Assembly: GCA_047495785.1 (NCBI GenBank)
Contig: JBLDXI010000021.1
Span: forward strand, 2,356,001 to 2,420,000
From: Lepidodermella squamata
Taxonomy: Eukaryota; Animalia; Gastrotricha
Length of the DNA stretch: 64,000 nucleotides
Direction of reading: 5' to 3'
Within the stretch, counting starts at the first letter, position 1. Every line of letters begins with the position of its first letter. The notes under the pieces were generated by a model. It was given only the letters and a program-made list of their open reading frames with translations. It made no database searches and was not told the origin of the DNA. Below, one piece after another: positions 6,884 to 55,322 of the stretch. The position numbers and the translations under genes are program-made.

Positions 6884-7351
6884 AATGAGAACATTCCTGT
6901 TAGTGTGTGTGCAAAGTTCGACAGTTTATTCTTGCGCCTCGTTGAAACGAGTTCCGAGAGCACATCAGCTGGGCTTTAATGTAATAGTCTAATCTTATTC
7001 TTATGAGCATCGGTGACTTGACTGTTTGTGTGATTGTGAACTCAAATAAATAAAGTGAAGATAGCATTCCAATAAATGAGTTTTGGATTGTTTTCGCCGA
7101 GGGCAATCGCACGATGTTGTTTACCGTTCGGTTGCGGATGATTGATTTTGTTGATTAATCCGGCACAAGCAGCAAGTGCCGGCCCAGTTTTAATTAATGA
7201 CCGCATTATGGGTTTTTTACCGGTTCGAATAATCAATGTAGGAATTTTCCGAAATGGCTTTGTTTTTGGGGCTAGTACAGAAATATCATGTGCCATGTTG
7301 TGGCAGATAGAAAAGACTAGTCCAAGTTTTGCATTCTCTGTCTTTCGAAAA

Positions 7352-8364
7352 ATGAATGCCGGAGTCAAGTTACTGGTCGCTCTTTTTAGTTGCATAATTC
7401 TACCGCATGCAGTCGATGGAATTGTCTGCTACGAAGGGCTTCACACGGAACTCGCCTCGGGCGATGTTAAGTTCCGCTGGCACAATGTTACGGATGGCTG
7501 CTCAGCTTGTTTGAGTCTCAGCATAATTCAAACCGATATTTTCGGCGACCTCATGAAGCAAGTTTTCATTCGTCGAAATCACAAAATTATTCATTTCATT
7601 TAAACAGAATCGTCCACCAGTCTTGCGATTCGACAGGGCGAACCTGTTTGCAAATCAACTGCTTTGTAAGGAAAATGTTAAGATCTATGCGAAAAATTAG
7701 CTGAACACTTTTTTTTTAGTACAATGAAAAGACATTTCCAGCCGATGTCAAGATACAGGATGATTCGTCTCAGCAGTGCTCTTGCTGCACCACGAATTTC
7801 TGCAATCACGACAACGGAAAAACATCTCCACGATTCACTAGTATATCGATATTTTTATTCATTAATAAATTTTCCCACTTATTTTTTCTATATAAGAACC
7901 TCCGCCTTGTTTGTCGAGCGACGCCGAAGAACAGGATCCGTCTTGCGTCGGCTGTGTAACCGAAAGAAATATTACTTGGGATAGAACGATACTGTAATGC
8001 GAATTTTTTGTTATTTATTCTCCATTAAGGATAATCGCTGTTTTTCTTTTCGCTTTTCATGTGCTATAGAACGCGGAAGATGTGCTTATCTGACGGCTGC
8101 GCGGATTTCGCCAAGATGTGCGCCAACATCGACCATTGCGACACTATCAACAACGAGCAGTGCTCTTGCACCTGCAGTGTCAATTTTCCGCACAACAACT
8201 CGATTTCACGCCATCGAAGTGTTAGCAATCTCGAAAAAGTGCCCGTGATTTACCTTTTATCTGCCGCCGGTCGAATCAGTCCTATTTCCGCATGGCTCGC
8301 CTCTGTTAGTACCTTAACAGTTTTTCTGAGACTTTTCTGCAAAACTCTAGAAAATGATGATTAG
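7352..8364 (+). CDS. Secreted, probably GPI-anchored Ly6/uPAR (three-finger) protein with a second Cys-rich module, 5 exons
   Basis: Signal peptide MNAGVKLLVALFSCIILPHAVDG followed by IVCYEG. The spliced product gives CSAC, C..C..C and the CCTTNFCN Ly6 terminal signature, then a second Cys-rich unit and a hydrophobic C-tail. Introns 7558-7607 (GC-AG), 7666-7719, ~7841-7896, 7994-8069. Confidence 0.7.
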
Positions 8365-11008
8365 CGCAGGAAATAGTTTTATCTCTCAAATCAAGATTTC
8401 ATGCATCTGCTATCAGGTTTTATTTTTATTTACTCACATCATCTATGCGAGTTTGTATACTAATCGAGCAATAAAACTATTTCTGGACGGAAGCTTGGCC
8501 CAAAGGCGCATTATATATATTATCGCATGTTATAGCCGTTGCGGGCGCAGTTGCGGGCGACAGATGTGCGGGAGGGAATATAAAACAATTTTTTGCCGAA
8601 AAACAAAGCATAGGTTATATTTTGACCACCCCCGATCGTTATTGTTATGGAAGACCCCCTCATTGCACTTGCCTATATGTTATCGAATATACCAAAGTTT
8701 TATGACGGCACTCAATCATGTAAAAACAACATAGATTATTGTGATTTCGGGCTATAAAGAGGAATTACAATTTAGCCTAGATAGAATTTTCGCCACGAGT
8801 GGTTCATTTTATACCACTCAGACAATATGATATTGCCCAAAAATGTTACCGTCTTGACCAAGCCGTTGTTCAGCACGCTCTTGTAAAAGAAAAAAATCGA
8901 CTCGTTGTCAGACTGAAACCTCTTTCTGAGAAAATGATACATTCATGACAAGTGAGTAGGATCTTCATAATAAGATGTCTCCACTTCAGAGTTTCATGCC
9001 GTCATTTTTTCCGGCGTAAGCCTGCAACCCTTTACTGCCGCAATGCTATATAGCTTGTCTAGCGTATTATTACCTTGTTTCAAGTTTTATTGCGCACGCC
9101 GTGTTTTTTCTGCGGCCCGGCTTGATGACGGCTGATGTTTTTTCATGACTCAAGAGATTTGATTAGCGCAACTCGGTAGCGAATATTGCTTTTTTTTATT
9201 CAATTCAGTGTATTTGCGGTGCGCGCGCTCTTCGAGGCGGCTCGTTATATCGCCACCCTGTTGCATTATAACCTACAACCGCAAAAAGCGCATCTTAATC
9301 GCGGCTAGTTTTTTGCGCTCGTCATGATGCTCCTCGCCCAACATCTCGTATAATTTGGTTTCTTCGAAAAACCTTTCAGCGTGTGAAAAAATATTTATTT
9401 ATTTTGAATAAAATACTCTCTTTATAATAGCTTGTTGTTTTTTGGCATTTACGTTGCGCTGAGGCTGGCTCACTGTTCAAGGCGATGTGCGCAAGGTTTT
9501 TCAACGGATGATGGGCTTTCAGTCAAAGTTATAGACACTTTCTGTAACACATATTCGAAGAGTATATAGCCGGAAGAGTAAAGCGATACGAGAAATGATG
9601 ATGCCTTTTCAAGTTTTTATGCTCGACGCTGTTGAAAGCACTAGACAGTTTAAAGCGCCAGTGCTCTTTTCTATTTAGTTGCTGTAGTGTGAGAAAATCG
9701 CAATATTATTTTGCAATTAAGTAGTTAACGCGTTTTATTAGGGCTATTTTTCTATATAATAATAAGTCAGCTTCTCGGCAATTTCTGCATACTTCCTTCT
9801 ATTCAGAATCATTTATCAAGTCTGAGAAATCGCACCGGAGACACGCGCATCCAACCTTTCGACAGGAAATAGCGCGGCTGCGTTATGTTTCAGTATATAT
9901 AATGACGTTTCGATGATTCTTGCATTTTTAGGACGGAATAAAAAAGTAATTGAAATGCGCTAAATAGTCGCTGCTCACCTATTTATTGCCTTGACACTCT
10001 TTGATCTTACGGAAAATTAATTACGCTATTTTCTGTATTTCATCTCAGAGCCATTAAGAGTGACAGAAACGCCCATTAAGAAGTTAGAAGTGCCCGCTCA
10101 CGCAACGGAGCTGCTACTCTAAAATACAGAAAACAAAGGGCTGTGTGGTTTTTAGGTCAACCGCACCTTTTAGCGCGCGTTCAATTTCCTTCCCGCGGCA
10201 ATATTTTACGCGCACTATTTTCGATGGTGCCAGATCGTGTTTTGCTGACCAGAGGACCACAACAGACTTCCTTATTCGGAATGAATTCAAGTACGAGCAG
10301 CATAGTACATTAGAGCCGATCGCACGGTTGCTAGCTCTCGAGACGCTTTTTTCCATTTCCAAGGGCGTTACGCTTGAGCCGCCTTGAAAAATTCGATTAC
10401 CGTCGTACATGCTGATGAATGGATCGGGTGCGCGCTTTTTCCGAACAAATTATTTGTCTGCAGTTATTTCAAAAACTGACCGCTTTTTACTATGATGACT
10501 GAATTTGTTTAGAAATGCCTGCTGCGATAATGATGTTCACAAACACAAAACATTCACGCTATTTAAATATTTCATGTCAAGCTTCACCAGTGACCACACG
10601 CAAGCCTATAACGGCGTGTTTTATGGCCGCACCCCGCCGAAATTTCAGGTCATGCGGCGACAAGTTACACTCGCTGCGATCATCTATTGTATCGATTTGC
10701 CTGCCTGTGAAAGCCAACAACTGCTTATTAGTATACAGCCGGCAATAAATCGCGTATTATGCACGCGCTGATAACACGCGCCTTTCCCATCGGGCCCCAG
10801 CAGATTTTGAGCGCGTCTAGCCGCAAAAAAGACACCACTAATAATAGTGCCACCGCATTTCGAATTGCGCGCCGCTAAATCAAAAAAAGCGCATTTACCC
10901 GGTCTTAAATTTTTCTGATGCTTATTATAGGCGATTGTTTTCTACAAAAATAGTGCTCTCTAGTACGAGCAGAACAATATATTCATCAGAGGCAATGTGT
11001 GTGGTCAA

Positions 11009-13106
11009 ATGATGGCGATTTCGAGCCTTCTCTACCTGTTCGCCTTTTCTTTGCTGCTTGTCGCGGTATCGGCCGCTCAGGATCCAGTTCATGTGATTGA
11101 TTTGACCCGGCCAATCAAGCCTGAGGATGCTGGAACAGTGATTCTCCCGACAGTTTATCGGCTCGAAGAGTCTCTACGCGATGACAGCCGCGTTCTCGTC
11201 AATACAGTCGAAGTCAAGGACACGCGTAAGGCAACTAGTGCGCTCTTGCCGCGTGGTTTCTACGAAAACTTGGGCGGTGTCGACGCTCTTCAGGGTCGAC
11301 GGGTTCACGCTTTCATTGCCCCGTTGTCCAGCGACAGTTCAGCCGAGCGGCGGCGGTACTCGTGGACGCACGAAGACTTCGCCAAGGTGACTCCCCACTC
11401 AGTCGTCATACTCATAGACTCGTCGGCGTACGCAGATGACGAAGATCACGAGCACGACTTGCTGACAACCGAAGCTACTGATTGTTTGATATTCGACAAG
11501 CAAATATCAGTTTTAATCACAAACCATCGATATATTGACGGCAAGCGAGAGCTGGAAGCTTCCCGTCGAAAGTCGACGTATTGCAAAGGCCTTGCGCCGT
11601 GTAATTCGACTCAATCGGCTCAATTTGCCTCGCTCGAACTCGCGTTTTTAAACAACGGAATTGTTTTAATAGTATCGGCAGCGCCGGTGTCTCACGAAGA
11701 CGCCTTAAAAATGGGCGCAGCGGTGGCCGAGTCTCGGAAAGCGGCTCGGCAAAGGCTCCGACGCCATCACCACCATCAACGCCATGAGCGGAGTAAGCGA
11801 GGCTACGCTCTCGAATTCACTGACGACGAGTTCGATTCCAGCACATTTTTCTACGCGTATTTTCTGGTTTTCCAGCCAGACCGCACGGTACCAGTCGGAC
11901 TAGCTGCTGTGACCTTGCTCAATTTCACATCGAAGCAGCCAGTTTCGTTATCACACGAGTGGTTCCCGAAAGACCCGCTGTCAAACTCACTACCTCTATG
12001 GCCTGGAACACCAAAGCCGATCGTACGAGCGACCATGTCGACAAAAAGTGGTCGGGCGATGTTGTTTTCTGAGCAGCAAGCCGCGAATATCGGCGAGCAG
12101 CATCCCAATTTCTTCGCCGCCCCAGTTGGACCAGCCTTATCGCCGCAGCACCGCACCGTGCGCCCTCCGCGGCCGCATGTGCGTGTCAAGTTCGCGGAAC
12201 ACTTTGGCACCCACATTGACGCGCCTTATCATATGCTGCCTAACGGATCCGACATTGCGAAACTACCAAAATCAAAACTGTTCTCTAATTGCTGCTTCAA
12301 GGTTGACCTTTCGCGGCAGGTAAGGTTGATTTTTCGAATCTCAAATTTCGACCTCTCTGTTCTTGTTTCAGATGCTCCCAGGTCGTAAGACGTCGGCAAC
12401 CGAGCGTGGCATTTCTATATCGGACTACGAGGAGTTTGGACCTTCAAGCTCTTCGTTGAAACGCATGTCATCGGGCTGCGTCGCGCTCTTTCACACCGGC
12501 GTCAGCAAGTATTGGCGCAACAGCTCGCTTTACGTCAACCAAATGATTTTTCCCGGGGTTTCACGGGAACTGGCGTCAATGCTGGTGCAACCACCGCCTG
12601 GTGCGACTGAAGCCCGCTACGTCGGGCTGGGCATCGATACGCTCAGCATAGATCCAGGTCCGAGCGAAGATTTGTCCGCACATGTTATAGCTGCCTCGAA
12701 TGGCGCTTTTGTGCTCGAAAACCTGAACAATATACACCAACTGCCTGACGGAGGGAAACCGGTGCCCTGTCTCATTGTAAGCTCACTGATTTTGGAATCC
12801 ATTTACTCGTTCGCGGCCATCTGCTACTATTAACGACTCGCCCTTTTAATTTAATACTTTCAATTACTGAGATTTATCAATTGTTTCCAGATTCCGTTGA
12901 GCATCGATGGTGGATCGGGATCGCCTGCATCGGTTGTGGCGTTTTTAGGTCAAGAAGAAGCTTCATCTGTCGAAACGAGCCCTGAGTACGATGCTAGCTA
13001 TCCTTTCATAAAAGCGGCTCCTCGCGAACTCAACTCAGCATCCTCTCTACATATGCTGACTGTACTTATGGCCCTCGAACTTGGGTTACTAGCGATTTTC
13101 CGATGA
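11009..13106 (+). CDS. Secreted cyclase-family metallo-hydrolase (kynurenine formamidase/isatin hydrolase-like) with an N-terminal degenerate domain and a C-terminal hydrophobic/GPI signal
   Basis: EHFGTHIDAPYH (HxGTHxDxPxH), PLWPG, LGIDTLSID, VLENL, PLSIDGGSGSP. N-terminal signal peptide. Introns 12320-12371 and 12777-12890. Confidence 0.88.
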
Positions 13107-32865: not shown

Positions 32866-34423
32866 ATGTTTTTAAGAGTCGTACATATCAGTCGCCGATT
32901 TACTGGAACGCGGTTTGTAAAAACTGACACTAGTAACTTGGAAAATGAGAAATTAGACTGGAATGCGGAAGCTGCAGCTTGTCGACGTGAACTTCTAGAA
33001 TCTAATATACACGAGTCGCGAAAAGTTGTCAACCTACTTCTTGGTGGAAATAATGTTGACATCAGTTCAGGACTGCTAGCTAGTGTATTCTACGTTTTGA
33101 GCTTTGCTAACGGTAGAAAAATGGATATTTCGGAGAAAAGTGCTATATCAAAATTAACAAATCGCGTGGCCGAAAGCGCGTCTACCTTATCTGTCGACGA
33201 ATTGGCTATAATATCTGCTTCTATGCATCGAGCTCAGGTTGCCGTATCTGATAAACGTTTGCTGAATGCGATGGTCGTAGCACTAGGGAAATGTGATGAC
33301 TCTTCGAAAGTATTGAGAATTTTGAAGGTTTTGGATCTTAGCATTCGAAAATCTTTACCGCCAGAATCACTGCCAGCTGATACTGAGTTGTATGACCTCG
33401 CAAAATCTCTCTCTCGATTTTTAGCAATGCCAGACATAACCCCGCTGTACAGCACAAGAGTAATGCGATTTTGGCAAAAATTGAGAATATCAACGCCAGA
33501 ATTGGAACTAGCGCAGCAGCAATACACCAATTCAGTGCTTGAAGCTGGAAAACGACCTTTGCTGAGATGGCGTGTCAAAGACATTTCCCAAGCTGCATTT
33601 AGCTGCGGTTTTTTCGCCTACGACTGGTCAAAATTTTCCACGGCAGTGCTGAATGAGATCGAAATACGATTGACTGAATCGAAAAACTCCGACTCCCCTT
33701 ACATAAACGAAATCGCCAATTTTCCTGACGCTTATTTTCAAACTCTGCTTGGCCTGTTGTCACATGCTAACTGTACTCACTCCGATCGAATCGCTTCTTT
33801 GGTACGAAATCATGAAATCTTTCAGCGGTCTCCATCATTCGATGCCCGCAGCGTTGAAGCTTGGCAAACGTTACGAGTAGCGTGTGGTCTTGCCGTGAAA
33901 AGTAGACATGCAAATAATGAGGAGGCCGATCGACAGTCTCAGCGATTAACTGGAAGACAATATATGGTAGGATTTTCTCGTTCTGTTGTCAAATCATGGC
34001 CTCATTCAGTTTTTGTAGACTTTGCAGGTAGCTGACGCTGCTCGAATGGCCTTTCCGAAATCTCGCGTTCGTATTGCCCAGCTTCTGCCAGAATTCGCTT
34101 CCGAGGCCAAGGTGGATGTTGTGATAGAAAACATTGAAATTGACGGTAAACCTTCGAAGGTGTCACTTCTGCCGCTCCCTGAGCTGGCCTGTTATCGGCG
34201 ACTCGTTTACACAAAGCAGCCTCGAGATGCTAATATTAAGCAGCTGTTCTCCTTCTACCGACCTCAAGGAAGTGAACTACTTCGGCTTCGTTGCGTCGTA
34301 AACTCGGGTCTCGTGGATCGCGCGCTGCCTATTTTATGGCCGACATGGCGCACGTTACGCGAGAATAATCGGCATCTATTTGTCAGAAATATCCTTTTGA
34401 GATCCAATGGCACGTCAAAATAA
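32866..34423 (+). CDS. FASTK-family mitochondrial RNA-processing protein (FASTKD5-like) with C-terminal RAP-like domain, 2 exons
   Basis: Arg-rich presequence MFLRVVHISRRFTGTRF and a helical-repeat body. RVKDISQAAFSCGFF and EIANFPDAYFQTLLGL resemble FASTKD5 segments from memory. The second exon has a RAP-like pattern (VDVVI...LRLR...G...ILWPTW). Intron ~33967-34027. Confidence 0.65.
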
Positions 34424-43700: not shown

Positions 43701-45642
43701 ATTGATTGCCGTTATTCGTTCGCTGCGATAGAAGTATAAATATTGCTGGCTAAGACCGCACATCTTATGCGTAGTGGACAGTTGTTGCCTATGTCTTTCG
43801 TGTCTTTCACATCCAGTGGTTTACGCTATATCGGCTTCGTAACCTGGGTTTTTATTAACAAATCACATTTCAGCAAAATCTTCAAATTGCGCTGAGATAG
43901 TTATTGTCCATGTTTCCAGGAATTACCGCATGCAATACTCATCATTATATCAGGATCCAGCAAATAGCATCAAGTCAGCGAAGCACTTAGATGTAAAAGT
44001 TGTTTTACCAGAAGCCTATAAACACGAGGCGCACATTTTCTGCGATCGCTTACGCGCTGGTAATCGAATATAACCATTCTTCCGAATCTTATCTATGGAA
44101 CATGTACATGGAACACGTATAAGGGCGACTGGTTTGCCAAATTACCAACGCACATTAAGTTCAATTTTTTCTCCTTCATTTTGAAGCGAAGCGAGCACAA
44201 ATTCAATTTTGCTTCTGAGTTTCACTTTTTGCAGCGACGGACGCAGAAGTATATAAAAAATATAAAATACTCCGATGCGGCGTGCCCACAATGCGATAAG
44301 TTTGGCCGAAAACATATCATTACAATATTTTATTTCGCTAAATTACTTAGCTGCCGTCTGTCGATTTGCACTCCGCATATTTTACGACGAAAACATTGTT
44401 TTTTTCGTTTTCTTGTTCTCAAAATTTCAATGTTGATTTTCAGACATATAAAAGTTATATAATAAGGCTAATAGGATTAGAATTTCACGTTAAATGAAAT
44501 TGAATGGCTTGAGACTTCTTCCTCTGCCGCATCTTTCAACATATCGCCGATATAAATTATTCACAATTCAGAACCCCGCAAAGCGAACTTTTCTCGCATT
44601 ACAAGGCGATTTCACCCAATCGATCAAGGTAGAAAATGCTATTCGCTTCAATTACCAAGGCCTGTGGTGCCGTGGCGTTTTTTCTTTGAGGATTGACCTT
44701 TTGCCCTTACTGGTAATATCAGCATCAGCTGTTATCCTATCGCTTAGCATCCACGATATTATTTGTTTTATTGTTAACAGACCACCCGGTGAAAAAACGC
44801 ATTCGCCGCACGAAACCTCGTATATAATTCAACCGCCCTCCCAAATTTTTCTCGCACATCAATGGAAATAGCATTATAATGTCTGCAAGCGCAACATTCT
44901 TAATGCTGTTATTACTATTTTTATTTGTTATTGTTATAAATACATTTTTTAGCGAAAATCGGCGGCTAACGGACACTTTTGCCCTATATGCTCTAGTACA
45001 TATGCCGGTATTATTGTGCGATTGACTATCCAATTTATACTCAGCATGTACATTATACCTTCCCACGTTCTCGGTATAGTGATTCTGGTTCAACGTACAA
45101 TCGCCGGTATCATTTTGTTTGGCGCGTTTGATCGACTGTTATGAGGCTTCCAATTGGCCACTTCGCGTAGCCGAAAAACGCAACGAACCGATTGCAGAGA
45201 AATATATTTTTTCAGATCGTATTAGGAATAGGCTTTGTTATTTATTGTTTTTATTAACGCGTCGAATCTGATGATGGCTAGTGGCCGAATGGAGTTTTTC
45301 AAGAGTACAATATAGAGATTTGTTAAGTCATATATTCTGATCTGTCTGCCATCATTTGCTAGTTGTCTAGGATTTTAAACAAAACGATTGAAAGCGATAA
45401 CAGGAATCCGACGTACTTACAAATTGCCGATGGGTTACGCTTCGCTTGAACTGCGCAACCCCGGCCGTTTGCCGACTTAGTTGCGCCCGGCGTGTGAGCG
45501 CAATGCCGATTGCTTTCGTTGTCGTTGCATCATCTTCATCATCATCAATTTTTTCTGAGTCGAAACATAACCAGTTAAAGATCAGTTGCCTATCGCGAGT
45601 CGATCCCCGGAAGCCGCCTTGCCAGACCGCGGCGCACCCCCG

Positions 45643-48092
45643 ATGTCAACTAGCCCGTCTAGCCCGTTGTCGGCGAGCACCAGCGACCCTGACTGCAATT
45701 TCGCCCTAGTCATACCCACCACCCTCGGCAATTTGACTAACATCGCCGATGCCATCATCCGGTCGACGCACATGTCGACCAAGCTTATGGCGCCACTGCC
45801 AACAGTGTGGAACCCAGTGCGCAGCGCCAACACCCAACTGCCACCGTTCCTGCAACGCAACATCGACACATCGCCGCCTTTACTATCCACTTCAGCCGAC
45901 GAAAACGTGTCGTTGCTGGATGACTTTGACCTGTTCGGTGTTCCGTTCGCGCAGAGTGGTCACACGTGGCTGCACATAATTCTCGCTACATTGCTCATCG
46001 TCGCCATCATGATCATCATTATTTTCGGCAATGCCCTCGTCATCATCGCTGTTCAAGCAGATAAAAGTCTAAAGGGCATTCAAAACTACTTTATTGTCTC
46101 GCTAGCCGTGGCTGATCTTCTGGTAATTAAATTTCGATTCTCTCATCGACTTTGACTAATTTTCTTCTGTTTTTCATCTTAGGTGGGTCTGACTATCATG
46201 CCTTTATCTCTAGCAGTTGAACTGATGGGAAAATGGATATTTGGACAAATCGCTTGCAATCTTTGGCTCGGTGGAGATGTAAGCGCTCTCAATTTCATCC
46301 CGAAACTTTCATTAATGCTTCTTATGATGCCTTCTTAGGTCCTGCTATGCACAGCTTCGATTTTGAACCTCTGCATGATCAGCATCGATCGATATTGGTC
46401 GGTTACGCTGGCTGGTCAGTACACGGCTCGTGTGCGGAAGCACCGCGTCACAGTCATGATTGTTCTCGTTTGGATCCTGTCGACTCTGATCAGCCTGCCG
46501 CCGCTGGTCGGCGTGGCGCGGCGTAGCTCACGCGAAGACGAGTGCGAGCTTATGGACGACTTGTGGTACATCATCTACTCAACTTGTGGCTCTTTCTATG
46601 CGCCGCTCGTTGTCATGATTGTCGTCTACATTCGAATATTCGTCATAGCACGGCGAACTGCCCGGAAATCTGCTTTCAAGTTAACTAAACAGCTTCAACA
46701 AAAACGCCACAAACAGAAGCCTACGCCTGTTGCTGCTCAAATCAAAGGTATAACTTCAATTACAATTCTTCAGGATAATAATCAGTTTTTTTTTTATTTT
46801 AGGCTTGGCAGCCTTAAGTGCTCCGCCTAACAGCTGTGCTGCTAACGAAGTGACAAGTCCTAATAAAGAGAACCAAACGGCGGATACGCCTGCGGGGAGC
46901 GTTAATTTGACTGCTGAGAATCTCACGGTGATGAAAAATGTGGAGAACGGTGATATTGCGGGCGATCAGCCGGCGGCAGGTCACATTCCCGTCGCCGCCA
47001 GACGAACTGTTAGCCGCGAGCCAAGCAAGCCGAGCAGGTTCCGGCGATTCCTCCACCTGCTGCTGCTCAGAAAATACTTCCGCCGACGCAGTTCGTCAAC
47101 CAGTGGTGAAGATGCTGTTGGATTAGCTCTGTTGCGCAGGTCAGCCCAAGAATCAGTTCGCAGCGTTAGGAGTATTCGCACGGATGGCGACGATGACATT
47201 CGAAGCAGCGTGCGCGCCGGTAAAGTTGTGATGAGCAACGATCATGCCATCCACCAAGCGTCGTCAATGCTTGGCAACGTTGCCATGAGCTTGGCTGTCA
47301 TTCCCCGCACCGCACGCAGACGTGACTCCACGGCTTCGGAATTGCCGAATATTCTAAAGTCGCTCGCCGCTCCCGAGCTGCATCAAGTCGCTTTTGCCCC
47401 TATATCTTCGCCAGGTTTTTACCCCATTTAAAGATAGTGTATTAATTATTAAGCGGATTTTTTCTACAGCTGTTCGACAATCAACAAGCAAATCTTCGCC
47501 GGAAGATTCTGAGAGGCCGCTCGAAACAGCCGAAACTAAAGAGGAGGACGGTTCCTCCCCTGACAAGCCGGCTGTGAAAAGTTCTGTTTCAGGATTCAAG
47601 AGTAATAAAAAGGAACCTGTCGTTGCGCCCCAGTTGTCGCTAGCTGAGGAGGTTGAACGGCGGAAGAAACGTCTTGCTAAAGAGCGCGAGCGGCGAACAA
47701 CTCGAATCCTAGTCATTATCATGCTTAGTTTCATTGGCTGCTGGTTTCCTTTTTTTACACGTAAATTTCGCATAAATACTTTTCTTCAACTTGCACCTTT
47801 CCATCTGTTAACAGTTTACCTAGTTTCTGCGCTTGCAAAATGGGATGTGAACCGATTCATTTTTGCAACATTTTTCTGGTAAGCTCTCTTTTGACATTTT
47901 GAACAAAAATGGTTTCATATAATCATATATTATGCTTTAGGTTGGGATATTTCAACTCTGCGTTAAATCCTGTTTCCGTACGTTTCTCCTCATGTTTTGT
48001 TACGCACCTATATAATTGATTTCCTTACACAGTATGCTGCGTTCAATCAAGATTTTCGCGCGGCATTCAAGCGCCTTCTCAAAATGAAATGA
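45643..48092 (+). CDS. Class A biogenic-amine GPCR, alpha2-adrenergic/octopamine-alpha2-like, ~8 exons
   Basis: GNALV, QNYFIVSLAVADLLV, TM3 D..CTASILNLCMISIDRYWSVT, TM5 WYIIYSTCGSFYAP, a long ICL3, CWFPFF, FFWLGYFNSALNP, and a short C-tail AFNQDFRAAFKRLL. Confidence 0.9.
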
Positions 48093-48374: not shown

Positions 48375-49105
48375 CTATTGAGAGTAGGCAAAAGCTGATA
48401 GATCTACGCCAGTAAGATCTTCGTAGAAATTTGACTGACTGCTTTCAGCTGTGTCATCTATTTATTGAAAAATTTGTAAATTAGCAAATCGAAGTTTATT
48501 CTCAGTTACCTGAAGAAATCGCATTACTCGTTGGTATGAGTAAGCTGTTTCGAGCAGAAAAACTTTCAAGCGATTCGACGTACGCCGTGTTAGCAACATT
48601 CGTGGACCGCAGATTTTCCTATGAGAGAAGGCAGCCTGCTATAATTAGCAGTGGTAAGATGAGACAAAAGTACGAGTTCTTTTCTTTTGACGGCAATATC
48701 TTCCTTCATTTCAATAATGCGCTGCTCCAGGAACTTCTTCTTGCAGTCAGCTTCGACAGTAGCAACAAAGCAGGATGCCGCTTTTTCTGCCTATGAGTCA
48801 TGCGTTCAAAAATACGTCTGATATTTTGAAATTGTGCACAAACCAAGTTGAGAATTTCATCACTCAATTTCTTGTTTTTTCTTTGAGACAAGGTGATTTC
48901 ATTGCGCATAGTCTCGACTTCTGCTCTAACTTGACACAAATAATTCAACAGCAATTAACGGGAACTTTCACCGATGTTAAAACAAAAACCTACCGAAAGC
49001 CACTGCATTAGATAGCGAAGCAGCGGTGTCTTCAGCAAATTCCAGCTCTTGGATAATATTCGTAAATCTTTTCGCAATGGCTGATGCTTTCTCCGAGTTC
49101 TCCAT
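48375..49105 (-). CDS. Small coiled-coil protein of unknown function, 5 exons
   Basis: MENSEKASAIAKRFTNIIQELE... joined through phase-compatible GT-AG introns to VRAEVETMRNE..., ...FLEQRIIEMKEDIAVKRKEL, ENLRST... and a last exon ending FAYSQ*. Confidence 0.6.
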
Positions 49106-49622
49106 AGTTAACACTTCCCACGCGTGTTCGACTTAAGATCAAAGTTAACTTTCGATGAAAAAACAAAGGAATGTTTGTAACAAAGATTCTCGATTTATTT
49201 ATTCGTTCGATAAAGTATATTAAATTTCGAATAGGGATGCACGATAAAATTTCGATAAATAAGAAAAATGATAATATATTTTAATGATAGGCAAGACTGA
49301 CTAGTTTGGCAGAAATATCATGAAAGCCAATCAGGAACTTGATGAATTATAAACGTTTCTTCTAATGTCATAGGTCTTTCAATATAATTTATCAATAAAA
49401 TTGAGAATATTGTGCAACACGTTAAAATCTCAACAAGTATCCAAGTAAAAGATAATATTATTTGATCAAGTATAAAGCAGGTCAAGTTAGACAGGGTCGA
49501 GATTTAAATAACAAGACATGATTATCAATTATAAAACTCTGTACAGATTGCATATCTCTGTCGCCACAGTTGACTGACGATAGCACAACGAGAGAACTGC
49601 GACATGAAATTTTCTGGTGTTG

Positions 49623-50765
49623 TTAATCGCATTTGAAGATGTGAATGACAAAGTGATGGTTATCAATCTCAATGCAGCAGCGCAAGTCATCTTGGCCTTC
49701 AAGCCAATTTTCAGACGAGTCATATATCTGATATTTAGCTACAAAGTCGTCTGCTAATTCTGAAGCTTCTGAATCGCTAACATTCCTTCGCTCTTTCAAT
49801 ACAGGCAAGCAATGTTCCGTAAACAATTTGATGATCCTGTTTTCATCTGCATTAAATTGCATGATAGGCAGCACGAAGAAACCAGGACGTAGCAGACTAA
49901 GTGAATCGTGGACAGACTCAAGAATGAGGCGACTTAGGTGTGTGGGCACATTATTCGTGATTGTTCGGCAGCTAACCAAACAGTCGAGATATCTCTGCCG
50001 CCAAGAGGTCACGCCTCGTCCCCAGATGATTATTGGGAAATTGCCGATTGTAGCTAGCGTCATACAGGCTAGCATGCGCCCAGTCCTGCCATTGCCATCT
50101 TTGAAAGGGTGGATAGCCATGAAATGGTAGAGCAAATAAGCAGCTAGCTTAATAATTTTCTTCACCAAGATAACTTTGGATGCCCCGTTATCGAACATTC
50201 GCCGTATTTCGGCGTTGTAATCGTCTACTAAGGCATATAATTGATCTTCGATCACGCCTGGGTCGGGGTATGTATGATCATATCCTCTAGGTTTAGCGGA
50301 CGCAGTACGAAACTCCGACAGATTCCCATTCTTAGAGCCAATAATGCGCGAGTGAAGCCTACGAATGCTCTCGACTGATAGTAGCATATAGTCGATATCA
50401 CACTCCCCGTCCTTGATGTCGCATAACATTTCCAGTAAAAATGATTTCGAGTAGATCAGAGCGTTGAACAAGTTGCGAGTAACGACCTCTCTAGGTGTGG
50501 CTGAACTTGAAACGGGTGAGAGAGCATCTTCTGTTTCACCGACACTCACCGTGCCTATCTGAGAAATGCGGTTGGAACACAACACCCAAGCCACGGCGTT
50601 ATTTTTAAATGATATTTTGTGTTCGTTCGAGATTACACATTTCAGCCCAGAAGATGGCAAAGGAATCTCAATATCCAGTTCATCCAATTTTTTTACAATA
50701 TCCTCTGCAAGTGAAGTCGAGTCTGAACTGTTTGTTTCATCAGAAAAGTCAAAATCCACAAGCAT
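49623..50765 (-). CDS. Fic-domain protein (copy 1), intronless
   Basis: HPFKDGNGRTGR catalytic motif, EFRT flap, and YLDCL helix. The likely ATG is at 50765, 20 nt after a ttttatttag acceptor. Confidence 0.9.
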   Translation of the reverse strand: MLVDFDFSDETNSSDSTSLAEDIVKKLDELDIEIPLPSSGLKCVISNEHKISFKNNAVAWVLCSNRISQIGTVSVGETEDALSPVSSSATPREVVTRNLFNALIYSKSFLLEMLCDIKDGECDIDYMLLSVESIRRLHSRIIGSKNGNLSEFRTASAKPRGYDHTYPDPGVIEDQLYALVDDYNAEIRRMFDNGASKVILVKKIIKLAAYLLYHFMAIHPFKDGNGRTGRMLACMTLATIGNFPIIIWGRGVTSWRQRYLDCLVSCRTITNNVPTHLSRLILESVHDSLSLLRPGFFVLPIMQFNADENRIIKLFTEHCLPVLKERRNVSDSEASELADDFVAKYQIYDSSENWLEGQDDLRCCIEIDNHHFVIHIFKCD

Positions 50766-50884
50766 CAATGCAATTAACAAGTTTCCTAAATAAAATAAAA
50801 ACATAATAATCATAATTTGAATCGGTTTAATCATAAAAATCACCGCACTAAGGCAACAACAAGTCTTAGTTCAAACGATTAGTA

Positions 50885-51960
50885 TCAAAAGCGTGAAATA
50901 AAAAGTTCACAGAGGTATGAGTTGGTAATACAAATAACAAAACGGAGATCGCCATGAGTCAAAAGAAACTTCGGCTCTTCTATCTTCTTCTGAAAACAGA
51001 TCAGCAGATCGATGCAAGAGTTTAATTGATAGGCCTGTTTCTCATTTTTTTCAATTCCTTCCGATGAATGCGAGAGGGTGAAATTGCTGAGTAAACAATT
51101 TCACGGGGGTTCCATCGCTGTTTCTGTTGCAGCATTTGGAGAATCAGTGAATCCAATATTAGATCAGTCAGTTCCTTCGAATGTAGACTTTTCCTGGCAA
51201 ATTCAAGGGCACTCAGATAACGATCTCTTCCTTCTCGCGTCCATAGAGAAAAAGGAAATATCCCAAGTGATGAGAAGATGAACGTCAGCAACAATCGGCC
51301 CGTCCGACCATTGCCGTCGGGAAAAGGGTGTATATCAAGGAAACGCAATAAAAATGACGATGCCAATTTGATCAATCCTAGTATTTGTTTTTCTCGACAA
51401 CTTAGCACCTTGAGCCGAAGAATCGCGTTATTGAATTCATCAATAAGCTGATAAAGAAGGCCTTCAACTAGATCAGGTTCGGCATATTCGTATTGGCATT
51501 TATTAGGTCGGGCTCGATTTCGTCGAAAGTTGCCAATTTTCTTCCCAAGGACAGTGCCATTAATAAATTGCACAAATGATACAGAAAGAAGGAGATAATC
51601 CAGAGAAAACGGTGACTGCTCAATGGATATGACTTCACACCGAGAAATCAACGATTCTTTGACGAAATTTAGAGAGTTGAATAAACATACAGTTTCATCC
51701 ACTGCTCCATAATCGTCAACAGAACTTTGTGATAACTTGAAAACTTCGCTCGCCGAAACGGTTCCAGTTGATTCCATTTCATTACAGCGTAAAACCCAGC
51801 CTGCGAATTTCCTTCTTTCAGATACAGCCTGATTGGAAAGAATGAAGGGTGGAAGGTGGTTGGCGGGAATTAGAGGGATCAATCCCGATTCAATACTCTT
51901 ATACGCTCGAAGTATAAGGTCAGTCTTAGCGATATCAACTTCCGCTTCTGGTGCATCCAT
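50885..51960 (-). CDS. Fic-domain protein (copy 2), intronless; the ORF stops at 51022 but continues to 50885 after a 1-nt frameshift in an A7 run
   Basis: HPFPDGNGRTGR, GNFRR flap, YLSALE. The extended tail aligns with the C-terminus of copy 1. Confidence 0.85.
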
Positions 51961-52214
51961 CACTCGACCAAGTTGCAGAACTTTTGTAAGCGAAACCGCA
52001 GCTTACCAGTAGTTAACTAGAAGCTAGAAATATAGCCCTTCGATCACCTACAAATTCGATATCACAAATGAATAATGTTTATTTTCGAGCCTTTTGTTTG
52101 CGTTTCGTCATTTTCAAACCCATCGCGCTAAAAGTCTTGAATTTTATTTACAGTTAATAATAATTATTCATTTAATCTAAACATTTTGGAAGTATTAATT
52201 ATTTTGTGAGTTCT

Positions 52215-52227
52215 GTTGCTAGGCGAC
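52215..52227. promoter_or_regulatory. RFX X-box upstream of the ciliary gene CFAP99
   Basis: GTTGCTAGGCGAC, a near-consensus X-box ~520 nt upstream of the CFAP99 ATG. Confidence 0.6.
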
Positions 52228-52256
52228 AAGCGTCGCTCATCTATCCGCTCACGTCT

Positions 52257-52636
52257 TATCACCGCACACCACAGTATTATTTCACTATTGTTTTCTCCAT
52301 CTTATGTCCTAGTTACTAACTGGTACCTGTTACATCTGTGCTCAAAGTGTAACATTTAATTTTACCTTCTTACCTTCCACAGAAGCTCCTTTATGCTATT
52401 TAGGAAGAAATTACTATAAAGACAGACATTTCTGCTCAGCTGCTCAGCGAAAGCAATTTTTGCGAATGAAAGTATCACCGCATACCACAGTCTCTTACCA
52501 TTGTATTCCTCACGCGCCTCGCAAGCATTTTCCATCTTATGTCCTAGCTACTACCTGGGGCATCTGTGTTTAAATTGTAACATTTAATATTCAACTTTAC
52601 CTTCTTATCTTCCACAGAAGCTCCTTTGTGCTATTT
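52257..52636 (+). repeat. Imperfect direct duplication (~145-165 nt units) between Fic copy 2 and CFAP99
   Basis: tatcaccgca(c/t)accacagt ... tccatcttatgtcctag ... tgtaacatttaat ... tttaccttctta(c/t)cttccacagaagctcctt(t/g)tgctattt occurs at ~52257-52401 and ~52473-52636. Confidence 0.85.
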
Positions 52637-52743
52637 TGCTGTCGTAATCAGGAAGATAGTAATTATTGGTGAATCTATTTGTTCGCGGCACTTGTATTAT
52701 ATTTTTCAAAAATCACGGTGTTGTGAATTTTTCTATTAGATCG

Positions 52744-55322
52744 ATGGCAGCCAAAGAATTACTTACTCATTGTTATCAATTGCTGACATCGTTTAAAACA
52801 AACGACGAAGATGCCGAAATATTTGTTGAAAACTACATTACCTCCAATGGGGTGAGTACCTTTTGATTTAGCGATGTTCACTATTTTGTTTGGTTCATTA
52901 GATCTCCGATCCAATACTTGTCAAACATGTGAAAACTGTTTTCTTTGGCTGCGTCAAGTTTGAAAAAGTTATTCGCACAGTCGTGGATGCGTTTTACGCA
53001 AAAGAAGGGAGCACTGTATTACTCTCCGAAAGACATATTTACACAGGTAAATCATCATGCGATTGACCTTAGATGTTAAAGTTGAAATCACTTTCACTGC
53101 TTATGAAAAACTAGTGTTGACATATCTCATCTTGTTTTACGTGGACACGATTGGCATGCAATCATTTCGTCGAATTATTGATTCGCAGCATGTCGTTCGC
53201 ATGCACAAGGTAATTAATAAGGTTAACGGTTAACCCGTCTTCACTAAACTTCTCTTTAGTTTCTCGCTTTACTGTGCAACGAAAATAACTTATGTTCGTG
53301 GATGAAAGAAGCCTGGAAAAGAATTTACGATACCAGCTTCGTGGAAAGCAAACTACTCGAACACGTTTTAAGGTTTTTGAGATTTCAATACGGTGAAATA
53401 CTTATCATTTAATCTAATGCTATTTGTTGAAAGATGGCTTCCAGAGCTCAATGACCTAGTGATGCGGTTGGAAAGCAAAATAGCTAACGCTGAGCGAAAG
53501 CAATCGGATGACGAGGATTACGATTTAGGATTAAATGAAAAACCGAAGCGATTCACGGGTAAGTAATTTTTAGCTGGCACATAGTTGTGTAACCAATCTT
53601 TAACAGTCGCCGAGCCTTTTAAGTTGACGAAACCGAAACCTCGCGCAGTACCTGTACCCGAATTGGTAAGTATTTTCTCCCTCAAACGTTAATATTTACT
53701 TTCTCGCATTTCACAGATTGCAGACATGCCTAAAACTAAACCACCTCCTGAATCAATTTTTTCGCCCCCAAGAGAATTTGACGTGATAGAAGAAAAAAGA
53801 GAAGAAAATCGCCGCAAAGCACAAGCTCTCCTTGAGGATGCAAATGCTAATGAGTTTTCCTGCGCTGCCGCCTCCCGTACAAAGCCAGAAAAAGTTTTGC
53901 GGCGAATGGAAGAAATAAAAATGGAGCAGGATCAAAAACACGCATTCAAGCCTCCCCGGATGAATCCGACTCCAAAGAGTACCTTGCGATCTGACTTGAC
54001 CATAAAATTGAACACCGCAGCGATTTTACGAGAGAAAAAGCTATGCGAAGATATCGAGCGCGAGCAGCTGAAAAAGATAGAAGAACTAGAGAATGGTGCC
54101 TTTTCCGATGCGCAATATCGAACTTGGAAAACAGTCAAGGATCAGGAACAAGCCGAAGGTAAATGATTGGATCTGAGACATTAAAAAGGTATTTACTTTA
54201 TTTGCTGCTAGCTGTTAAAGCAGAGGCGGAACGTCGCATACTTGAAGGCCGCTTGGCGAGAGAGAAGGCTGAAGTAGCGTATGCAGAGGCAGCGGTAGAG
54301 CGAAAGAAAGCTGCTGATAGCATGAAGGAGGAAGCCAAGCTTCGCATCAAACAGTATTTGTCTGAAAGACTGGGTGAGCAAGCGGAAATGAGAAAAGCAG
54401 TTGACCAAATGGTCGCGGATCGAGGTAAAATAGCGGAATCGAAAGCGAAACTAAAGGAGATAAAGAAGAAGATGGTCCAAGAAGTGACCGCGGAAAGCCG
54501 AAGTTTGTTGGCTCAAGCTCTGGAAGAAGCGGAGGCCGAAATGCGAAAGCGAGCCGAACTAATTGCTCACATTCGTGCTTTGGAGTCAGTACCTCTGGTG
54601 CGGCAAAAGCTTTTCGACCGCACGGAGCCGGCTGGGTTTGGGTTTCTGGAAGAAATGTCCATTGCCGAGCTGGAGGAAAGAATAAACTTGGCGAAAGCTG
54701 CGCGAGAGAAGGAAGTTATGGAGCGGCAGGATATGATTGTGCAAGATAAGCGCCAAAAGCAGCAGATGCTCACCGAAGCCATGGATCGAATTGCTCGTCA
54801 TCGAATGGCTCGAAGCCGCATTGCTGCAGCTCAGAAGCTGAAAAATGAGTCAGTATTTCTTAACTTCTTAATATTCTTAGGTGTTTAAAGCTCAATCTTT
54901 TGACAGAGCTGAATCTGAGATCGAAAACACGCTATTATCATTCACTGCGACTTCTTCTAATCGTCCATTGTTGAAAACTCGCCACGACAGTATCAAGGAT
55001 CTTAACAGTATCACTGAAGAAAAACGAGCGCAGCTGAAAGAGCGGCGTATGCAGCTACTCCAGCAAATGAAGCCAACGCGATCTAGCAGCTTCACTAAAG
55101 ACAACAGTCTCATATCAACAAGTGCTGATCAGCGCCGAACCAAATTTAGGGTAAAATCAGTCGACAAATCTTATGCCTCATGAGTTATTTTTCTGCTTGT
55201 TTTAGAAACAACTGGAGGAGGGGCATTTTCAGGAGTTCGAAAAAGCCCAGCGTAAAACTGACCAAGCAATCGGCCAGGGACGCAAGAAAGATTGGGACAG
55301 CCTCAAACTCATATACTCATAA
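52744..55322 (+). CDS. CFAP99: Cilia- and flagella-associated protein 99, ~10 exons
   Basis: N-terminal helical region (VVDAFY...LTYLILF...W..IYD..FV), EPFKLTKPKPRAVPVPE, IKLNTAAILRE, GFGFLEEMSIAELEERI and long coiled coils. Confidence 0.85.

Follow-up and report, generated by a model that had tools for sequence, protein, structure and literature searches.

FICD/HYPE is the animal ER AMPylase and deAMPylase of BiP. In Fic enzymes generally, an inhibitory glutamate holds the second arginine of the catalytic motif and keeps ATP from binding productively; in bacterial Fic proteins as well as FICD, substitution of this residue switches AMPylation on, and deAMPylation by FICD requires it. According to a 2021 review (PMC8097203), the only functional fic gene of most metazoans is FICD, which acts in the ER, and the 2015 survey that distinguished four eukaryotic Fic groups likewise gives FICD as the metazoan one (PMC4454073). 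Our literature search found no description of soluble, non-FICD Fic enzymes in animals, and such proteins are unnamed in databases.

Here we analyze a window of 64,000 nucleotides (the whole stretch of DNA under study) from the gastrotrich Lepidodermella squamata, which contains two adjacent Fic genes, here termed FicA and FicB. We consider it probable that these are real, intronless, soluble class-II Fic paralogues belonging to a patchy, non-FICD clade and restricted to this lineage at this locus. Judged by their sequences, they are a known kind of enzyme in an unusual host, drawn from an unstudied clade and differing from each other at the inhibitory glutamate.

Two co-oriented, intronless Fic genes between native neighbors

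The minus strand carries two co-oriented ORFs (51022-51963 and 49623-50843; Table 1), for each of which the Fic family PF02661 is the sole Pfam match, at 47.9 bits for FicA and 61.9 bits for FicB against a gathering cut-off of 24 bits. The catalytic motif HxFx[D/E]GN[G/K]RxxR is complete in both, in the form HPFxDGNGRxxR. The two proteins are 34% identical across about 260 residues, and their sequences mark them as paralogues of each other. Pfam finds no TPR repeats in either, and there is no TM-like segment in FicA, nor in FicB if translation starts at ATG 50765; the only hydrophobic maxima are those of the buried helix that follows the motif. If translation began at the upstream in-frame ATG 50834, FicB would gain a hydrophobic segment at its N-terminus (KD 2.56). 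Because relatives have starts of the form M..LDFxIxE that align with the FicB N-terminus MLVDFDFSDE, ATG 50765 is taken as the probable start, the RNA contigs leaving 50709-50843 uncovered. The C-terminal 85 residues of FicB match no Pfam family and are modeled by AF2 as a strand, two helices and a terminal beta-hairpin. A profile HMM of the tails of relatives scores this extension no higher than shuffled sequences, and the hhalign alignment ends at residue 289; a likeness to those tails in length and in the closing strand pattern is no more than an impression.

Table 1. Positions of the two Fic genes, their motifs and the flanking genes within the window.
Feature	Position	Strand	Remarks
FicA CDS	51022..51960	-	Upstream gene of the pair; 312 aa + stop; ATG 51960
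FicB CDS	49623..50765	-	Downstream gene of the pair; 380 aa + stop; probable ATG 50765
FicA catalytic motif HPFPDGNGRTGR, H211-R222	51295..51330	-	
FicB catalytic motif HPFKDGNGRTGR, H219-R230	50076..50111	-	
FicA inhibitory-helix motif C-N-E-M-E-S, Glu = E63	51769..51786	-	
FicB inhibitory-helix position S-N-R-I-S-Q, Ser = S68	50559..50576	-	
FicB C-terminal extension, residues 296-380	49626..49880	-	AF2 secondary structure, lower pLDDT
Spacer from FicA stop to FicB start, 256 nt	50766..51021	-	FicA 3'UTR and in-frame ATG 50834, use uncertain
Divergent intergenic region, FicA to CFAP99-like gene	51961..52900	.	RNA gap 52012-52901; repeats D1-D3
7TM (rhodopsin-type) receptor exons, flanking native gene	45586..47882	+	End conserved in related species
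CFAP99-like coiled-coil gene, flanking, native	52901..55183	+	Spliced RNA contig; CFAP99_CC on the relative's orthologue

Contigs assembled from an RNA run (X2) are colinear with the genome, with no joints, over 49220-50708 and 50844-52012, while a contig from the same run over the CFAP99-like neighbor lacks five introns, each bounded by GT..AG and 48-68 nt long; FicA and FicB are therefore both intronless and transcribed. Their transcript levels resemble those of the neighboring genes, and coverage ends at 52012 and restarts at 52901, with zero depth in the spacer at 52.2-52.9 kb. Long single exons are common in the window, as exemplified by a 389-aa ORF at 32866-34035. FicA has a third-position GC content (GC3) of 0.37 and FicB one of 0.47; the neighbors range from 0.47 to 0.56.

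The pair sits in a contig several megabases long, within a genome of 121 Mb, and the same window contains cadherin, SMC1, eRF1, SAM-synthetase and further eukaryotic genes, with spiralian animals as the nearest named matches of the host eRF1 (about 75-79%). The 5.8-kb Fic segment is single copy in the genome, and a search for transposon-like terminal repeats flanking the pair and for a second genomic copy found neither. Upstream of FicA there is a local two-copy duplication of about 230 nt (52257-52636; repeats D1-D3). Contigs from a second run (X1) have even DNA depth across genes and flanks and resolve two haplotypes in the spacer.

The same gene order, namely 7TM receptor, CFAP99, SMC1 and eRF1, is found on metagenome contigs of a related species, whose eRF1 is 88% identical to that of the host and whose coding DNA has an identity of about 64-79% in the aligned blocks. 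Blocks shared by blastn include 47676-47883 at the receptor end and 53770-54831 in the CFAP99-like gene, and the receptor gene of the relative has a 7tm_1 match. The interval between receptor and CFAP99 spans 2.6 kb in the relative versus 5.9 kb here, and tblastn at E-values up to 10 detected no Fic-like sequence within it. The pair is thus lineage-specific at this locus in a comparison with one relative, which either a gain here or a loss there could explain.

A contaminant or a misassembly, weighed since bacteria are where soluble Fic genes typically occur, has no observation in its favor and is exceedingly improbable as the origin of this segment, given a multi-megabase contig in which native, spliced genes flank the pair in an order kept by the relative, the even depth of DNA contigs across genes and flanks, and the presence of the stretch in runs of three studies, two of which contain at least half of its sampled words. 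These data bear out most of what an earlier note on this DNA had read from the letters: two co-oriented Fic ORFs with full motifs (ORFs and Pfam agree on their placement), no TM anchor or TPRs (none from the supported starts), a highly divergent pair (34% identity), no coding introns (RNA data, which it proposed as a check, have no joints over either gene), and insertion between conserved genes (a native receptor and a CFAP99-like gene in an order shared with the relative).

Relation to FICD, folds and the inhibitory glutamate

Besides FicA and FicB, the 121 Mb of the genome contain one more Fic locus, making three in all: a canonical, intron-bearing FICD on another contig (C1, about 288-290 kb), with an N-terminal TM segment, TPR-like sequence, several exons, the inhibitory motif TVAIEGN and the catalytic motif HPFKDGNGRTSR. 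This count agrees with the designation of the pair as non-FICD in the earlier note, which had suggested copy number as a check. In an exon-by-exon comparison with FICD, the motif-bearing last exon ranked 261st for FicA and 149th for FicB among 264 Fic matches, a ranking limited to the region that this exon covers; short BLASTP gave no alignment between the inhibitory-helix region and the FICD exon. Orthology to FICD was rejected for both genes, since from the supported starts they encode neither TM anchor nor TPRs and FICD is among the Fic sequences least similar to them.

AF2 models both proteins as all-helical Fic folds (pLDDT 83 for FicA and 82 for FicB). Their top Foldseek matches in the PDB are FICD and BtFic (3cuc), with TM scores of 0.5-0.7, and the match probability is 1.00 to FICD, BtFic and SoFic. 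In an alignment of 84 sequences, the H, F, N, R and R of the motif are each conserved in 82-84 and are kept by both proteins, as are the flap Arg and Tyr, which are invariant. Since all catalytic residues and these two flap residues are retained, both proteins are predicted to be active. The inhibitory-helix Glu, present in 79 of the 84 sequences, is kept by FicA (E63) and replaced by Ser in FicB (S68), one of three substitutions at this column. Relative to the class-II motif [S/T]xxxE[G/N], FicA thus keeps the Glu within non-canonical flanks, while FicB has exchanged it for Ser. A further Ser substitution in FicB affects a flap position that is Gly in 82 of the 84 sequences.

The latter substitution is one of several observations that could suggest expressed but decaying passengers, or else highly diverged FICD retrocopies, a pair of readings that we regard as rather unlikely. 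Between the reference and two runs from close samples, FicB differs at eight non-synonymous and three synonymous sites (pN/pS about 0.76) and FicA at three of each (pN/pS about 0.31). The many non-synonymous differences in FicB would be expected under decay, though counts this small cannot judge selection and leave room for relaxed constraint on FicB. An anonymous contig from another organism bears a FicA-like gene whose reading frame shifts at the motif, which also counts towards decay. However, both ORFs have stayed intact despite having diverged to 34% identity, every catalytic residue is kept, and both genes are transcribed at neighbor-like levels. As to retrocopies, which intronless genes can be, the low similarity rank of the FICD exon argues against a FICD origin, and the start motif of FicB is common to non-FICD relatives.

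On the probable reading, that of real class-II paralogues, FicA and FicB would be soluble class-II Fic (Fido) enzymes made from separately transcribed genes, and both are predicted to act as nucleotidyl (AMP) transferases outside the ER lumen. From the Glu in FicA and the Ser in FicB, together with the established biochemistry of Fic enzymes, we infer a possible division of labor, in which FicB would be competent to AMPylate constitutively and without restraint, and FicA would act either as an AMPylase under gating or as a deAMPylase. Extended further, and with considerable doubt on our part, the pair may represent an unrecognized family of paired soluble Fic proteins of scattered eukaryotes and giant viruses that works as a cytosolic switch, with FicB writing AMP and FicA gating or erasing it. 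If this were true, some animals would have Fic-based signaling or defense outside the ER and independent of FICD.

The asymmetry at the Glu position, the close linkage and common orientation of the genes, and their presence or absence as a unit between relatives would also be expected of a toxin-antidote or selfish module, in which a brakeless FicB serves as the toxin and FicA as its neutralizer, by analogy with bacterial FicT/FicA. We consider such a module very unlikely, in that FicA is a complete Fic enzyme with a catalytic site, not a small separate helix like the class-I antitoxins, and in that the other paired loci that we read do not have this Glu asymmetry. Membership in the class-I toxin-antitoxin systems themselves was rejected, there being no small separate antitoxin and both genes encoding full Fic enzymes.

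Relatives and possible sources of the pair

Word-index protein searches retrieved nearly nothing for FicB and only weak matches for FicA, and the ESM Atlas gave generic Fic neighbors only, with a eukaryote/Mollusca 'Fido' cluster as a lead. An exhaustive HMMER search of 1.84 billion representative proteins used a four-sequence profile, two of whose members are anonymous SRA proteins. These two came out on top, followed by a continuum descending from 138 bits, and among the matches listed 150 relatives score 95-138 bits. FicA and FicB are reciprocal best matches of each other (123 bits). Most relatives are anonymous metagenome or SRA proteins, and cluster look-ups supplied few names.

A tree of 88 rows (IQ-TREE, LG+C20, quick search, with long branches) contains a 97% branch that places all named bacteria and archaea on one side and a 65-row clade on the other. 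The clade comprises FicA and FicB with the anonymous SRA proteins P0001 and P0131, a group that includes a Brachionus calyciflorus protein, and a group of 35. In the free quick tree FicA pairs with P0131, but the AU test preferred FicA and FicB as sisters, an arrangement that it did not reject and that has the higher likelihood (p-AU 0.91); on this basis we make no claim of a duplication that preceded speciation.

Nine contigs of relatives were read, and the type of DNA is evident in seven. P0001 and P0131 lie on short AT-rich contigs. Four contigs from the group of 35 are eukaryote-like, being long and of low coding density, and the genes seen near Fic on one or another of them are Mob1 together with a kinase, Arf (one exon), a nexin of the SNX13 type, SCO1 and RVT; on three of these four there is an adjacent pair of Fic genes. 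A contig from the other group has 27% GC and 83% coding density; most of its genes are ORFans, and Skp1 and two Fic genes in tandem are present as well. In composition, which is the basis of this comparison, it looks like a giant virus. A further relative is on a contig of 24% GC with a T5orf172 gene, and the rotifer protein (Brachionus calyciflorus, CAF1049846.1) is on a contig of 26% GC with one called gene. Neighboring genes on two of the relatives' contigs revealed no close kinship to this genome. Taken together, the hosts of these contigs make the clade look eukaryote- and virus-associated as well as patchy, though most of its members are unlabeled. The rotifer is the only other named animal seen in it, so that the pair does not nest within a widespread, vertically inherited animal Fic clade, the outcome that the earlier note had named as evidence against its view.

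That note had proposed horizontal acquisition or lineage expansion, with bacterial toxins and effectors as the typical soluble Fic proteins. Lineage specificity at the locus holds, as described above; the bacterial source is not supported. In favor of a recent, direct transfer of toxin- or effector-type Fic genes from bacteria are the lack of introns in both genes and the distribution of the family, in that Fic proteins are overwhelmingly bacterial and the eukaryotic groups have been attributed to several transfers (PMC4454073). However, in one genome per GTDB species, searched with the pattern HPF[PK]DGNG, matches were confined to the motif region. Among 1,584 genomes drawn evenly from four large bacterial phyla, with at most five candidates scored per genome, the best reached 82 bits against the family profile, below all 150 of the listed relatives. 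The pair comes near no curated NCBIfam cut-off and resembles curated bacterial or defense families in generic Fic similarity only, bacterial promoter and terminator scans at the pair stayed at chance level, and GC and GC3 are near those of the host. The genomes searched thus hold no close prokaryotic relative, the named prokaryotes are set apart by the 97% branch, and the 34% identity between the copies indicates that the event was old. We judge a recent bacterial transfer to be very improbable.

Capture of a two-gene Fic cassette from a giant virus or another eukaryote, which then came to lie between the receptor and CFAP99-like genes, is possible, if on balance doubtful. It is compatible with the preferred reading as class-II paralogues of a patchy clade, of which it merely specifies the source. 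One sister group includes both the ORFan-rich contig of 27% GC with its Skp1 gene and tandem Fic pair and the contig of 24% GC with T5orf172, adjacent Fic pairs recur among the relatives, and the pair is missing at the syntenic site of the related species. On the other hand, an IMG/VR scan returned motif-level matches only, neither other viral genes nor terminal repeats flank the pair, FicA and FicB form a branch of their own that is not nested in the virus-like group, and the viral nature of the relatives' contigs is a matter of composition only.

Comparison with described Fic systems

An animal with two additional, expressed, anchorless Fic enzymes, one of which has lost the inhibitory Glu, would provide a naturally occurring system for testing Fic-mediated AMPylation outside the ER. 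The locus also illustrates that an intronless animal gene of bacterial appearance need not derive directly from bacteria, and the adjacent Fic pairs on eukaryote- and giant-virus-like contigs hint at a wider, uncharacterized family.

The pair shares with FICD/HYPE the Fic fold, the catalytic motif and the class-II arrangement, in which the inhibitory helix precedes the core within one chain, and FICD/HYPE is its best structural match in the PDB, yet identity in structural alignments is only about 18-20%. FICD/HYPE has a TM anchor and TPRs, both of which are missing from FicA and FicB, and it needs for deAMPylation the inhibitory Glu that FicB has lost. Bacterial class-II Fic proteins (BtFic 3cuc, SoFic, CdFic) resemble the pair in being soluble single chains that combine a helical N-terminus, an inhibitory helix and the core, and BtFic is the best sequence match in the PDB, though with E-values of just 1e-6 to 1e-7. 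In contrast to these proteins, FicA and FicB have no winged-helix C-terminal domain, reside on an animal chromosome and fall among eukaryote- and virus-associated sequences in the tree. The class-I FicT/FicA systems (VbhT/VbhA) likewise consist of two linked genes, one of which encodes a Fic active site free of inhibition; there, however, the partner is a small antitoxin helix, while here it is a full-length catalytic Fic protein, and FicB retains a helix of its own in which Ser replaces Glu.

The eukaryote- and giant-virus-like 'Fido domain-containing' proteins, of which CAF1049846.1 is an example, belong to the same 65-row clade, have in common the signature P.SL[YW]...R..Y after the catalytic motif as well as an inhibitory motif of the form SNxxE..GT, and often occur as adjacent pairs; to our knowledge, none has been studied. 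Their identity to FicA and FicB is only 25-38%, and the loss of the Glu from one partner of a pair is a peculiarity of FicB.

Start and surroundings of the Fic pair

With the start of FicB, one of the two intronless soluble Fic genes of the window, taken as the ATG at 50765, the adjoining stretch 50766-50843 contains upstream ATGs in frame with the gene, the first of them at 50834. A protein begun at these ATGs would gain a strongly hydrophobic N-terminal segment (IMIIMFLFYLGNLLIALML). This same stretch has a pyrimidine-rich end, ...ttatttag, which by its sequence looks like a splice acceptor, and 50709-50843 is exactly the part that is left without cover by RNA contigs.

FicA and the CFAP99-like gene are separated by a divergent spacer, which at 52257-52636 holds a local duplication, with two copies of about 230 nt made up of blocks that are 73-95% identical. 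Between the 7TM receptor gene and FicB, low-depth contigs from the RNA run X2 contain three joints of opposite strands at 48391-49053. These could be artefacts of a hairpin-like or antisense kind, or they could stem from a small structured transcript.

Elsewhere in the window, a single 463-aa ORF (10997-12388) encodes a Pfam 'Putative cyclase' domain (PF04199, kynurenine-formamidase-type), a bacterial-looking family that is found here in animal DNA. In the Fic-less interval of the one related species, metagenome contigs L138 and L139 both carry a minus-strand 122-aa ORF at 1353-1721, which has no Pfam family and for which blastn detected no counterpart in the window.

Adjacent Fic genes among relatives

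Fic genes of the sister clade lie two side by side on three long eukaryote-like contigs, and adjacent pairs seem to be a recurring arrangement among the relatives of FicA and FicB.

Sister-clade Fic pairs on eukaryote-like contigs
Contig and positions	Arrangement	Protein lengths
L145:5876-11134	tandem	379 + 377 aa
L142:1879-4879	tandem	447 + 292 aa
L143:2734-4894	divergent	314 + 297 aa

Fic genes on two further contigs

On L010, an anonymous SRA contig, a FicA-like gene (794-1460) is broken by a frameshift at its catalytic motif, which reads HPLYDGNGRT. It adjoins a deoxynucleoside-kinase-like gene, whose in-frame stops look like small introns.

The 105-kb ENA metagenome contig L147 looks like a giant virus, with 27% GC, 83% coding sequence, a majority of ORFans and one Skp1_POZ gene. 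It carries two tandem Fic genes (7180-9485; 463 and 283 aa) separated by 62 nt, and the 283-aa protein falls in the same broad clade as FicA and FicB.
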